Numbered from the stretch's first letter, positions 51,703-62,739 are shown. The stretch is 64,000 bases of DNA from Macrostomum lignano (GCA_002269645.1 NIVC01001151.1:124001-188000), one strand, 5' to 3'. Notes: generated from the sequence alone by a model not told the origin. Numbers and translations are program-made.

Positions 51703-54700
51703 ATGGCTGAGGACGCCGAGCTGCAGGCAGCCACCGAGCTGACACGTAGCGGCTGGGACGTCAACGCGACCGACTCTGAGGGCTGCTCGGCCCTGCACAA
51801 CGCAGTGCAGCTCGGGAACTGCCGGGCTGCCGAGCGCCTCATCCAAGCAGCTGCTGACGTCGACCTGCAGACCAGCGCCGGCTCCAGCCCACTGCACATG
51901 GCGGTTCAGCGAGACCATCTCCAGCTGGCGGAGCTGCTGCTGAGGTCGCAGGCCGATCCCAACCTGCTGGCTGGAGACGGCCAGACGGCCATTCAGATGG
52001 CCATCCGAGCTGGCTCCGACGACCTGCTGCGGCTGCTGCTGGCGGCCGGTGCTGACGCGAACTGGCCGACCGGTGAGCCGCCGCTGCTCACCGCCATCTG
52101 TCTGGGACGGGCTGAGGCCGCGAGGCTGCTGGTCTTGGCCGGTGCCGACGCGAACGTCCGAGCCCGGACAGTGTCCGAGGCCACTGCGCAGGCACTTCAG
52201 GCAAGAGAGGCGAAGCTGCTGCAGGTGAGGTTACCGATGCCTGCGATTCTCGCTGCAGCGAGCCTGGGACATCGGCAGATTCTGGTCCACCTGCTGGCAT
52301 CTGGAGCTGACTGCTACACGATAGACGGGAAGGGGGCGACCGTTTTGCACCATGCGGCACGCAAGGATGGTGTGATTCTGGCAATCGCCTTGTCCTTTCA
52401 GCAGGAGATCGACTGTCTAAATGACAATGGCTCATCTGCCCTCCACTTTGCTGAATCTGAAGAATCACTAAATCAGCTTCTTTTGTTAGGAGCGGACATC
52501 GACAGGAGAAACATCTTCGGCATGACGCCACTTGTGAATGCTGCCATCAACGGTTGCCTAAATGTGGTGATCAAGCTGATCGACAGTGGAGCAAACATCG
52601 ATCTGCAGAACACTGAAGGCGTGTCACCACTGATCATTGCCGCATGCAATGGCCACTTGCAAATTGTGGCCAAACTGATTGACTGTGGAGCAACCATAGA
52701 TCTGCGAAACAATGAAGGCGTGTCACCACTGAAATTTGCCGCACAGAATGGCCACTGGCAAGTAGTGGCCAAGCTGATCCACTGTGGAGCAAGCATCGAT
52801 CTGCAGAACAATAATGGCAACTCACCGCTGAATTTTGCAGCATTCCAAGGGCACATACAAGTAGTGGCCAAGCTGATCCACTGTGGAGCAAGCATCGATC
52901 TGCAGAACAATAATGGCAACTCACCGCTGAATATTGCAGCATTCCAAGGGCACATACAAGTAGTGGCCAAGCTGATCCACTGTGGAGCAAGCATCGATCT
53001 GCAGGACAAGGATGGCTGGTCACCACTGAACAGTGCCGCACAGAAAGGCCACTTAAATGTAGTAGTCAAGCTGATCGACTGTGGAGCAAGCATCGATCTG
53101 CAGAACAAGGAAGGCGACTCACCACTGAATGTTGCAGTATTCCATGGCCACTTGCAAGTTGTGGCAAAGCTGATCGACTCTGGAGCAAACATCGATCTGC
53201 AGAGCGATGATGGTTGGACACCATTAAACATTGCCGCACAGAATGGCCACTTAAATGTAGTAGTCAAGCTGATCGACTGTGGAGCAAGCATCGATCTGCA
53301 GAACAATGAAGGCTGGTCACCACTGATTGTTGCAGTATTCCATGGCCACTTGCAAGTTGTGGCAAAGCTGATCGACTGTGGAGCAAGCATCGATCTGCAG
53401 AACAATGAAGGCTGGTCACCACTGAATGTTGCAGTATTCCATGGCCACTTGCAAGTTGTGGCAAAGCTGATCGACTGTGGAGCAAGCATCGATCTGCAGA
53501 ACAATGAAGGCTGGTCACCACTGAACAGTGCCGCACAGAAAGGCCACTTAAATGTAGTAGTCAAGCTGATCGACTGTGGAGCAAGCATCGATCTGCAGAG
53601 CAAGGAAGGCGACTCACCACTGAATGTTGCAGTATTCCATGGCCACTTGCAAGTTGTGGCAAAGCTGATCGACTGTGGAGCAAGCATCGATCTGCAGAAC
53701 AATAATGGCTGGTCACCACTGAACAGTGCCGCACAGAAAGGCCACTTAAATGTAGTAGTCAAGCTGATCGACTGTGGAGCAAGCATCGATCTGCAGAACA
53801 AGGAAGGCGACTCACCACTGAATGTTGCAGTATTCCATGGCCACTTGCAAGTTGTGGCAAAGCTGATCGACTGTGGAGCAAGCATCGATCTGCAGAACAA
53901 TTATGGCTGGTCCCCACTGAACAGTGCCGTATTATATCATGGCCACTTGCAAGTTGTGGCAAAGCTGATCGACTGTGGAGCAAGCATCGATCTGCAGGAC
54001 AATTATGGCTGGTCACCACTGTACTTTGCCACGTGCCATGGCCACTTGCAAGTTGTGGCCAAGCTGATCGACTGTGGAGCAAGCATCGATCTGCAGAACA
54101 AGAATGGCGCGTCACCACTGAATGTTGCCGCACATAATGGCCGCTTGCATGTTGTGGCCAAGCTGATCGACTGTGGAGCAAGCATAGATCTGCGAAACAA
54201 AGAAGGCGTGTCACCACTGAAATTTGCCGCATGCAATGGCCACTTGCAAATTGTGGCCAAACTGATTGACTGTGGAGCAAGCATAGATCTGCAGGACAAG
54301 GATGGCTGGTCACCACTGAACAGTGCCGCACAGAAAGGCCACTTAAATGTAGTAGTTAAGCTGATCGACTGTGGAGCAAACATCGATCTGCAGAACACTG
54401 AAGGCGTGTCACCACTGATCATTGCCGCATGCAATGGCCACTTGCAAATTGTGGCCAAACTGATTGACTGTGGAGCAACCATAGATCTGCGAAACAATGA
54501 AGGCGTGTCACCACTGAAATTTGCCGCATGCAATGGCCACTTGCAAATTGTGGCCAAACTGATTGACTGTGGAGCAAGCATAGATCTGCGAAACAATGAA
54601 GGCGTGTCACCACTGATCATTGCCGCATGCAATGGCCACTTGCAAATTGTGGCCAAACTGATTGACTGTGGAGCAAGCATAGATCTGCGAAACAATGAAG

Positions 54701-60356: not shown

Positions 60357-62739
60357 GTAAGTTTAGTAACCTACTCCAAACTTAGGATAGATAGATAGAT
60401 AGATAGATCGATAGATAGATCGATAGATAGATAGATAGATAGATAGATAGATAGATAGATAGATAGATAGATAGATAGATAGATAGATAGATAGATAGAT
60501 AGATAGATAGATAGATAGATAGATAGATAGATAGATAGATAGATAGATAGATAGATAGATAGATAGATGGATAGATAGATAGATAGATACAGTCAGTCAA
60601 CTTCATTCCCACAGCGAGTCCGAGTTCTCAAAGCGGCTCCACGAGTCCCTCAGCAGCTCAGGATTCACCCGCATCAACGCGGCTGTTCAGAGCGGCACTG
60701 CTGCTGCCTTGGAGAAGATTCTGAGACAGAGTCTGGGCAGCCAATGCTTTTTGGTCGGCAGCTTCGCCGATGGCTGGGGCAACTGCCTCACAGGAATCTG
60801 CGGTCGGACTGATGCGGACTCCGACATGGATGTCACTGAGTTTCAGACGGGATTGCAGCTGCACATTGCGGGAAGTGGAGTACACGACGAAATGGAGAGA
60901 AAAGTAACGTGCAAAGAAGTCGAGTTCAGTGACGGTCACATCAAGCACCAAATAGACTGTGAGTTCTTGTCTGACTTCATAAAAAGGTACAACTTATGTT
61001 AAGTTGTTGATTTAAAAGTAGTTGCATGCCACTCCCATCCAACTCATTCAACTGCAGCCTCCAAGCCGAACGTCGCCACCTCTGGCATGACTTTGAGGCC
61101 TTCAGTCGACTTTGTGAGAGCTTTCCCCTGCTGCTTTTATCCTGAATTCGAAATTTTCCGACCCGGCTACAAGTCGTGCATTCCCGAGGACATTTTATCG
61201 GCCATTCGATCTGACACCCAGTGCCACGCGGTCGCGGCAGCTCCTCCAGGTCTCGAGGGCCAGTGCATGCGAGTCAGCACTACACTCATGGAGAGGGCGC
61301 TCATGCACAGTCTCACTACACTTCAAGGTCAGCTCTTCGTCCTGCTCAAGTACATCATCAAGAGAGTGATTGCAAAGCGAGTCAAGGGTCTGAAGACCTA
61401 CCACGCAAAGAACTTGCTCCTCTACATGCTGGACAGGACACCGGCTGACGAGTGGCGACCGCACAATCTGATCAAGCTGGTGAGACAGTCGCTGCAGCTG
61501 CTGCTCGACTCTCTCACTGACTCAAACAGCAGTGAGCAGCAGTGCATGCAGCACTTCTTCATGAGAGACGCCGCCATCTACTTGCGCAAGGACCACGAGG
61601 GAAAGACGAAGATCAAAGAAGTTGTGAGTCAAGTGATGGAGGAGCTGCCGCATCTGATGTCGGAGTTTGAGCAGACATTGATGAAGAACTCACCGAGTGT
61701 GATCGAATTTCACCCGTTTCTCATTATGCCGTTAACTGATGAGCTCAGCATTCCTGAATCAGACACAGAGTTCGAGTATCACCAGATCTATGATGCAGTG
61801 AAGAGAGCTTTAGAGATGCTGAGCAAAGAGATTTCGAGCAGTGATGAAGCGAGTCACGTGCAGCAGCTCGGCTCGCTGCTCAATCGGATTCCAGACTGCG
61901 CCAGAACTGCCAGAGAGAGTCTGAGAGCTCTGATGGGGCTCAGAGAAGGAAAACCGATAGGCTCAGTTGTTGATGCTGCGAGTTCCACCGATGTGAGCAG
62001 CGGAATCGCTTGTCCGCAAAGTGAGGCTGATTCCATGTTCCACTTTAGCGTTGAAGATGGCAGTGCAGAATACCTCACAGCGAGGCGTGACTTCGTGTGG
62101 AAGAGTCTGCTGGAGTCGGACTCAGCATGGAAGTTCATGTTCGATCCCGACCGAAAGCTGAATTTCCCATTCCTGCCCGACCACATGAGACACATTAAAC
62201 TGGCATTCCCGTGGCGGGTGCCCTACAGGAGCTGCGACTGTGTCTTCATCAACTTTCACGCTCTGTACAAGGCGCTCCAACTCGAGGCGAGGAAGCTGAG
62301 CGGAGATGATGAAGGAGTCAACACGTTGCTAGGAGACTTTGGTTCCACCAGACTGGACACTCAGGAGCTGCTGATGATGCTGCATTACTGCAGCGATGAG
62401 GCGAAGCTGGTTGAGATCATTCACAGCAACAGACAGATGATTGTGGACACTGGACTGGCTGGGCCCGTGCTGAGGATCCTGGATGAGAGGGTGAGTTCTC
62501 GCGATTTCTGTCCTGCTTGACTTTCTCGAATTTCGTCTTGCGCTGAGAAGCCGATGTGAAAATCGAAATTGCAGCCGGCACTGCGCCAGCGATGCGTTCG
62601 AGCGACTTGGGCGAAGGTGGAGGAGCTGATCAGCCAGAGAGAGCTCTCATCGGCCGAGGAGCGGCGTCGGGTGGAGCTGAGGATGTGGAGAGCGAGGCAT
62701 TTCCTGTGGGAGAAGGAGGGGATCGAGTCTGATGATTGA
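51703..62739 (+). CDS. Giant ankyrin-repeat / Mab-21 (cGAS-like receptor-type nucleotidyltransferase) fusion protein, 4 coding exons, ~3,531 aa
   Basis: Exons 51703-60356, 60615-60958, 61058-62490, 62575-62739 (phases 2, 1, 0) total 10,596 nt = 3,532 codons. Donors gtaagt, gtgagt, gtgagt; acceptors cccacag, actgcag, attgcag. NTase VGSFADG...SDMDV...SVDFV; Mab-21 helical lobe LLKYII...KTYHAKNLLLY...EW...HFF. The start ATG is uncertain. Confidence 0.85.
60386..60589. repeat. (GATA)n microsatellite in the intron between the ankyrin and NTase exons
   Basis: Direct inspection. Confidence 0.97.
60615..60958 (+). CDS. Exon 2: nucleotidyltransferase N-lobe (GS and DxD)
   Basis: cccacag|C phase 2; GS at 60757-60762, DMD at 60823-60831; T|gtgagt phase 1. 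Confidence 0.88.
61058..62490 (+). CDS. Exon 3: third catalytic Asp, Mab-21 helical domain and C-terminal helical extension
   Basis: actgcag|CC phase 1; SVDFVRAF (D 61108-61110); AGG|gtgagt phase 0. Confidence 0.88.
62575..62739 (+). CDS. Exon 4: terminal helical exon (no ATG, absent from ORF track)
   Basis: attgcag|CCG; PALRQRCVRATWAKVEELISQRELSSAEERRRVELRMWRARHFLWEKEGIESDD*. Confidence 0.7.
   Translation, partial: PALRQRCVRATWAKVEELISQRELSSAEERRRVELRMWRARHFLWEKEGIESDD

Follow-up and report, generated by a model that had tools for sequence, protein, structure and literature searches.

A four-exon Macrostomum lignano gene predicted to encode a cGAS-like nucleotidyltransferase fused to about 84 ankyrin repeats

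A 64,000-nucleotide stretch of the genome of the flatworm Macrostomum lignano (GCA_002269645.1, NIVC01001151.1:124001-188000; this whole stretch is called the window below, and unless stated otherwise positions are counted from its first letter) contains, at 51703-62739, a real four-exon gene that is largely unannotated and whose product very probably fuses a long ankyrin solenoid to a cGAS-like (Mab-21) nucleotidyltransferase. The gene is one of a large family, specific to the lineage, of fusions between ankyrin repeats and cGAS-like receptors (ANK-cGLRs), and it is an extreme member of a kind of protein that has already been described (Li et al. 2023, bioRxiv 10.1101/2023.02.22.529553), not a new kind. 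The reading favoured here, with a probability of roughly 0.55, is that the solenoid binds a partner, that the enzyme is activated as a result and that a nucleotide signal is then produced.

In the list of open reading frames (ORFs) the gene appears as three separate frames, 51703..60360 (2885 aa), 60709..61002 and 61087..62520. The TAA at 60358-60360 that closes the first of them coincides with GTAAGT at 60357-60362, and the original prediction, which was made from the sequence alone, had taken it for a splice donor and not for a stop. This was correct, as the junction is used in the GenBank protein PAA71625.1 (P0186, 847 aa). Joining the four exons (Table 1) gave a coding sequence of 10,596 nt, a multiple of 3 with one terminal stop, and a predicted spliced product of 3,531 aa (378 kDa, isoelectric point (pI) 5.6). 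All three introns are GT...AG and their phases are 2, 1 and 0, so that every coordinate that had been predicted, together with the phases and the protein length, was reproduced by joining the sequence. Upstream of the ATG at 51703 the frame is closed by stops. No signal peptide was evident by eye, which suggests a cytosolic-type protein.

PAA71625.1 contains all three of the predicted junctions, 60356/60615, 60958/61058 and 62490/62575, which read ...IRVPVLDF-N-ESEFSKRL..., ...HQID-S-SKPN... and ...ILDER-PALRQ... respectively, and its C-terminus is ...EKEGIESDD. The GenBank annotation of M. lignano was built from RNA-seq data using StringTie, TACO, de novo assembly and TransDecoder (PMC5730564). 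The three introns are therefore supported by RNA, the support covering 59731 onward. The same contig, NIVC01001151.1 (assembly Mlig_3_7), provided a further locus, L003, the first 14,270 bases of which are window 49731-64000 (100% identical); residues 1-208 of P0186 correspond to L003 10001-10624 (window 59731-60354) with 100% identity. Two UniProt models, P0001 and P0188, start exactly with the first complete codon of exon 2 and have the 2/3 and 3/4 junctions as predicted. In the paralogue P0010 (contig NIVC01001685.1) a phase-2 intron lies between the ankyrin and enzyme parts, 8 codons off the equivalent site, and the second intron is identical in position and phase to intron 2 here. Intron 1 is 258 nt long here as against 138 nt in a tandem paralogue (L003 46293-46430), the splice sites being identical.

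The public model PAA71625.1 leaves out about 2,680 residues of the predicted product. It is also chimeric, its range beginning in one copy of the gene and ending in a second copy 38 kb further on (L003 10001-48553), and it is without 8 residues that are found in both copies. The annotation pipeline dropped transcripts overlapping repeat annotations before submission (PMC5730564), and this may be why the array is absent from the GenBank model. Neither the 3,531-aa nor the 2,885-aa product had an exact match in the protein collection. Protein searches with the N-terminal 356 aa and with the linker plus junction returned generic ankyrin proteins only, at 41% identity or less, but these searches missed even P0001 and P0186 and are weak as evidence of absence.

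Exons 2-4 (647 aa) match Pfam Mab-21_C (E=3e-7, 30.9 bits against a cut-off of 24.1), as do all 13 of the family members scanned. For structure prediction and the search of representative sequences, P0001, which is 98% identical to exons 2-4, was used as a proxy together with stretches of the window. The AlphaFold2 (AF2) model of P0001, made with a 13-sequence alignment, had a predicted local distance difference test score (pLDDT) of 77.8 and a predicted TM-score (pTM) of 0.79. The top 50 PDB matches of this model were all MB21D2, cGLR, cGAS or MAB21L1; among the 35 best, E-values ran from 6.5e-5 to 1e-3 with target-normalised TM-scores of 0.4-0.55, and the best were human MB21D2 (7lt1), the coral receptor Sp-cGLR1 (8gjy), many cGAS entries and MAB21L1. 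The enzyme part is thus modelled with the bilobed fold of the cGAS/Mab-21 nucleotidyltransferases. Its motifs follow in the order G-S, D-M-D some 20 residues on, and a third Asp in 'SVDFVRA', and in the model the first precedes strand 1, the second belongs to strand 2 and the third to strand 131-139; most of the aligned paralogues retain GS, SDxD and VD. When compared by hhalign with a scallop cGLR candidate (Li et al. 2023, Table S3), a probability of 96% was obtained and the third Asp was aligned with the Asp of 'LDRVV'. A phmmer search of exons 2-4 against PDB sequences gave nothing significant, and the family profile gave only weak cGAS matches (E ~0.04). The fold and the catalytic motif of the original prediction are borne out, the former by Pfam, the AF2 model and its PDB matches and the latter by the conserved GS/DxD/Asp.

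With MB21D2 and Sp-cGLR1 the modelled enzyme part has the bilobed cGAS-like fold in common, but the sequence identity is only 13-19%, the TM-scores with these two are no higher than 0.4-0.5, and neither protein has the ankyrin array or the C-terminal extension of about 300 aa. Vertebrate cGAS is alike in its fold and in its C-lobe motifs (WRLSFS.TEK vs MRVSTTLMER; SYHVKT vs TYHAKN), and a catalytic-type acidic triad is present here, whereas neither a zinc thumb nor a basic DNA-binding surface is evident and the N-lobe is not alignable by sequence. Moreover, Sp-cGLR1 is a double-stranded RNA (dsRNA) sensor while the core here is acidic, with a pI of 6.2 compared to about 9.0 for human cGAS. A higher pI goes with nucleic-acid-sensing cGLRs (Li et al. 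2023). After the Mab-21 lobe comes a conserved, family-specific helical domain of about 250 aa (61750-62490 in exon 3; residue ~347 of the enzyme part onward), modelled with a pLDDT of 81. It gave no significant match when compared with PDB folds (best E 0.63).

The ankyrin region gave E=0 with Pfam PF00023, PF12796 and PF13637, in 41-51 matched stretches, and Tandem Repeats Finder (TRF) reported a 99-bp unit in 71.6 copies at 52572-59666. About 80 repeats had been predicted and about 84 were counted: 72 regular units, 70 of 33 aa and two of 34 aa, with about 8 divergent repeats on the N-terminal side and about 4 degenerate ones on the C-terminal side. Units share on average 80% of their DNA and 70% of their protein sequence in pairwise comparison, with a median best-match DNA identity of 96.5%, and 62 distinct protein units are found among the 72. 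Runs of 2-3 units recur elsewhere in the array at 97.5-100% identity. The array appears to evolve by duplication, loss and shuffling of units, and 'reshuffled', the word chosen in the original prediction, is a fair term for it. On the antisense strand the array gives spurious ORFs of up to 494 aa.

Per-position entropy showed that the framework of the unit is almost invariant and that variation lies at positions 13-15, 17, 21, 22, 25, 26, 29, 30 and 33, with maxima at 14, 15, 17, 21, 22, 25 and 26; it is concentrated on the hairpin and first-helix surface of the repeats. Positions 14, 15, 17, 25 and 26 correspond to five of the six that are randomised in designed ankyrin repeat proteins (DARPins) to make binding surfaces. 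The ratio of non-synonymous to synonymous differences per site (pN/pS) was calculated from changes counted on a minimum spanning tree that connects the 82 unique units of the two gene copies, in place of an earlier all-pairs dN/dS; neither method copes with recombination, and recombination between units violates tree-based methods. It was 0.34 for the framework, 0.97 for the 11 surface positions, a value biased upward because the sites were chosen partly for their variability, and 1.42 for the five DARPin-type positions, where there were 17 synonymous changes only. The contrast between surface and framework (Fisher p=5e-22) shows that the scaffold is under purifying selection and the binding face under at least relaxed constraint. 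At about 1, and not clearly above 1, the surface pN/pS is no proof of positive selection.

The array of a neighbouring copy is very different. A tandem segmental duplication of about 36-40 kb, which includes the neighbour genes, relates window 18418-44397 to L003 17143-40925 at 92-95% identity, and a second ANK-cGLR copy lies some 40 kb downstream at L003 42100-48553, with the same exon structure, 2,044 aa and 27 regular units. The copies are 98.6% identical in exons 2-4, 97.7% in the linker and 87% in the N-terminal repeats, and the ATG is at the equivalent place. In exons 2-4, pS is 0.016 and pN 0.006, giving a pN/pS of 0.36 (9 non-synonymous and 7 synonymous changes). Between the 72 units of one array and the 27 of the other, the last three are identical and no other unit has a positional counterpart. 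Judged by their sequences, then, the paralogues appear to keep the same enzyme while carrying different arrays.

A profile search of 1.84 billion representatives returned 711 matches at E<1e-3 and 81 clusters at E<1e-30. The strong matches that were looked up were all from M. lignano, weaker ones coming from annelids and bivalves, and ankyrin repeats and Mab-21_C occur together in many single gene models. Some M. lignano models, P0087 (PAA93319.1) and likewise P0081 and P0194 (PAA80895.1), appear to be fused to extra domains; the types seen are ANK-Mab21-ANK-caspase, WSC-ANK-Mab21-RING and one protein named in UniProt as SPRY domain-containing. In these caspase, RING, WSC and SPRY models the fusion to an effector could be genuine, or separate gene models could have been merged.

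The novelty of architecture that the original prediction had implied does not stand. About 3,000 cGLRs have been described, some of them fused to ankyrin or TPR repeats, and ANK-cGLRs have been shown in the coral Stylophora pistillata (Li et al. 2023). The same authors tabulate the M. lignano proteins PAA86972, PAA45980, PAA68676 and PAA68216 with Ank_2 domains, and some entries in their domain table exceed 2,000 aa. Five M. lignano family proteins were also cloned for their enzyme screen, in constructs that begin at the enzyme part, with double-stranded DNA (dsDNA) and poly I:C as ligands; one of those screened, PAA57558, is identical to P0019 of the family analysed here. Thus neither the ANK-cGLR combination nor the M. 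lignano family is new, since both are described in that work. The published ANK-cGLRs have, as here, an ankyrin block fused to a cGAS-like nucleotidyltransferase; this locus differs from them in that about 84 repeats lie in one exon, that the predicted product has 3,531 aa and that public models lack the greater part of it. In most flatworms Mab21-like proteins are the only cGLRs (Li et al. 2023), and M. lignano does not appear in the accessible part of Table S5 of that paper.

A second likeness is to fungal NLR-like proteins whose ankyrin, TPR or WD repeats are highly conserved (Dyrka et al. 2014, PMC4986451). In these, and to some extent here, repeats that resemble one another closely differ in number between close copies and are shuffled, and the variable sites of the ankyrin domains lie on the concave face. 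The signalling module differs, being cGAS-like here and a NACHT or NB-ARC ATPase in the fungal proteins. The mean unit identity of 70% is below the 85% criterion of Dyrka et al. 2014, and in its number of repeats the array exceeds several-fold what is reported for Podospora, 7 to >16 (PMC4986451).

In the favoured reading, the concave ankyrin surface would bind a partner, more likely a protein or another non-nucleic-acid ligand than DNA or RNA, and partner binding or clustering would turn the enzyme on. The activated enzyme would make a nucleotide second messenger to be read by a receptor, and evolution of the array by unit duplication, loss and shuffling would give the same enzyme differing binding surfaces among paralogues. 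The proposal made for the gene, that a variable sensor would control an enzyme making a second messenger, is plausible on the sequence evidence: the swap of arrays at 98.6% enzyme identity, the surface-focused variation and the acidic core stand in its favour, while the surface pN/pS of only about 1 does not.

Several points weigh against the reading as a whole. The coding sequence of PAA71625.1 starts at the internal ATG 59731, just past the regular array, and the N-terminal 356 aa and the array are in no public protein model. The true product might accordingly be the 847-aa form from 59731 or something similar, with an array that is untranscribed, separately transcribed or inflated by misassembly, and it would suit such a product that duplicated blocks make up 180 Mb of the assembly, in which tandem repeats are abundant too (PMC5730564), that multi-unit blocks in the array are 97-100% identical and that the GenBank model is itself a chimera of two copies. 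A frame free of stops over 8.65 kb, a unit divergence of about 20% and a framework pN/pS of 0.24-0.34 nevertheless argue for translation; the tandem paralogue retains the ATG, the N-terminal region and a continuous frame, paralogous models link ANK to Mab-21, and the repeat filter of the annotation pipeline may account for the truncation (PMC5730564). We consider a short product decidedly unlikely.

Other points against the proposed sensor-enzyme chain concern catalysis. The Pfam N-lobe model PF03281 had no match at E<=1 in 13 members, and hhalign with human cGAS aligned the C-lobe alone, with 79% probability; the catalytic assignment therefore depends on motif position and predicted fold, without a residue-level superposition. 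For MB21D2, the closest structural match, we know of no product. The PF03281 result does not exclude the protein from the cGLR/Mab-21 superfamily, since published cGLRs as divergent as this one are numerous, but it does limit certainty. In the screen table of Li et al. 2023 none of the five cloned M. lignano proteins has the name of an active enzyme and the main text mentions none, and the planarian S. mediterranea has neither cGAS nor STING (PMC13563047). It is conceivable that the Mab-21 domain has no enzyme activity and acts as a scaffold, as in MAB21L1 or MiD49/51, and that the protein is a giant ankyrin adaptor without second-messenger output. MAB21L1 is among the fold matches, 0/5 of the M. 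lignano paralogues in Table S3 of Li et al. are named as active, the gap of about 20 residues between Gly-Ser and Asp-x-Asp is longer than in the mollusc cGLRs of those authors, and the loop between the two motifs is poorly modelled (pLDDT <50 at residues 49-59). We nevertheless consider this unlikely, as Gly-Ser, Asp-x-Asp and the third Asp are retained in most paralogues, whereas Mab21L1/2/3 are without a predicted functional active site (Li et al. 2023), and comparison of the two copies shows purifying selection on the enzyme part. Somewhat less unlikely is an active cGLR whose array serves localisation, autoinhibition, oligomerisation or recognition outside infection (allorecognition, reproduction). 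The surface pN/pS of about 1, with its upward bias, could be explained by relaxed constraint, and the neighbour genes are of housekeeping types; however, variation falls on the canonical binding face and is not evenly spread, the pattern matches that of the ankyrin domains in fungal NLRs, to which a part in non-self recognition is ascribed (PMC4986451), and caspase or RING fusions are apparent in some family members.

In a wider form of the sensor reading, the ANK-cGLR family would have expanded, in a flatworm lineage whose relatives lost cGAS/STING, into a set of variable receptors inside the cell comparable to NLRs or VLRs, with quickly rebuilt arrays and with signalling by nucleotide second messengers; the family-specific helical domain at the C-terminus would be a new regulator or would provide the link to an effector. 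This is offered as a speculation, and we think it improbable as a whole.

To our knowledge the function of no ANK-cGLR is known. Most animal cGLRs are orphans, dsDNA or dsRNA having activated only a minority (Li et al. 2023), and the ankyrin-fused ones are the clearest candidates for sensing something besides nucleic acid. The locus is a natural experiment, because its two tandem genes have near-identical enzymes and very different arrays. RNA interference can be used in M. lignano. Transgenesis exists for the species as well (PMC5730564). Should the arrays turn out to bind proteins of pathogens or of the animal itself, they would represent a second route, beside NLRs, by which a repeat sensor that evolves fast is coupled to immune output. 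The value of the locus lies in the size of the array, the paralogue pair with swapped arrays, the C-terminal domain without a PDB match and the corrected public annotation.

Table 1 Features of the ANK-cGLR gene and of its surroundings (window positions)
Feature	Position	Strand	Details and evidence
Exon 1	51703..60356	+	8,654 nt, phase-2 end; start ATG, complete ankyrin region and linker; Pfam Ank/Ank_2 E=0
Divergent N-terminal ankyrin repeats	51703..52572	+	~8 repeats (290 aa); by translation
Regular array	52573..59706	+	72 units of 99 bp (two are 102 bp); TRF and unit table
Degenerate ankyrin repeats and linker	59707..60356	+	~4 repeats; contains internal ATG 59731
Intron 1	60357..60614	+	GTAAGT...CAG, phase 2; mostly (GATA)51 at 60386-60589
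Exon 2	60615..60958	+	N-terminal helix, Gly-Ser 60757-60762 and Asp-x-Asp 60823-60831 of the predicted nucleotidyltransferase core; by sequence, paralogue alignment and AF2 model
Intron 2	60959..61057	+	GTGAGT...CAG, phase 1; junction present in P0001 and P0186
Exon 3	61058..62490	+	third catalytic-type Asp 61108-61110; Mab-21 C-lobe PF20266 ~61336-61581; helical domain 61750-62490
Intron 3	62491..62574	+	GTGAGT...CAG, phase 0; junction present in P0001 and P0186
Exon 4	62575..62739	+	final 54 codons and TGA stop 62737-62739
28-bp minisatellite x18	62725..63232	.	begins within the last codons of the gene; TRF and sequence
Attractin-like Kelch/EGF gene	458-20000		
WD40 gene	28200-29099		
RING-variant (MARCH-type) gene	31719-32999		
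Family-20 glycosyl hydrolase gene	38616-42320		

The neighbouring genes are included in Table 1; no other immune-type genes were found within the window. Every unit of the 28-bp minisatellite at the end of the gene has TGATGATTGACAGGTGAGT, which provides stop codons and the donor-like GGTGAGT. An ORF of 225 aa at 25260-25937 has a C2H2-like 'YRCKYEHC...HHKRMH' and no Pfam match, and may be a mobile-element fragment. The GC content of the window is near 50%, which agrees with an origin from M. lignano, as do the GT-AG introns and the many satellites; a prokaryotic or viral source is rejected on account of the introns, the microsatellites and the 100% match to the M. lignano contig. Dense micro- and minisatellites lie at 1473-2210, 10502-11680, 20576-21434, 23384-27400, 28929-30705 and 44269-45207, and on either strand the satellites of the window give rise to long ORFs that are spurious (His-rich, Asp-rich and similar).

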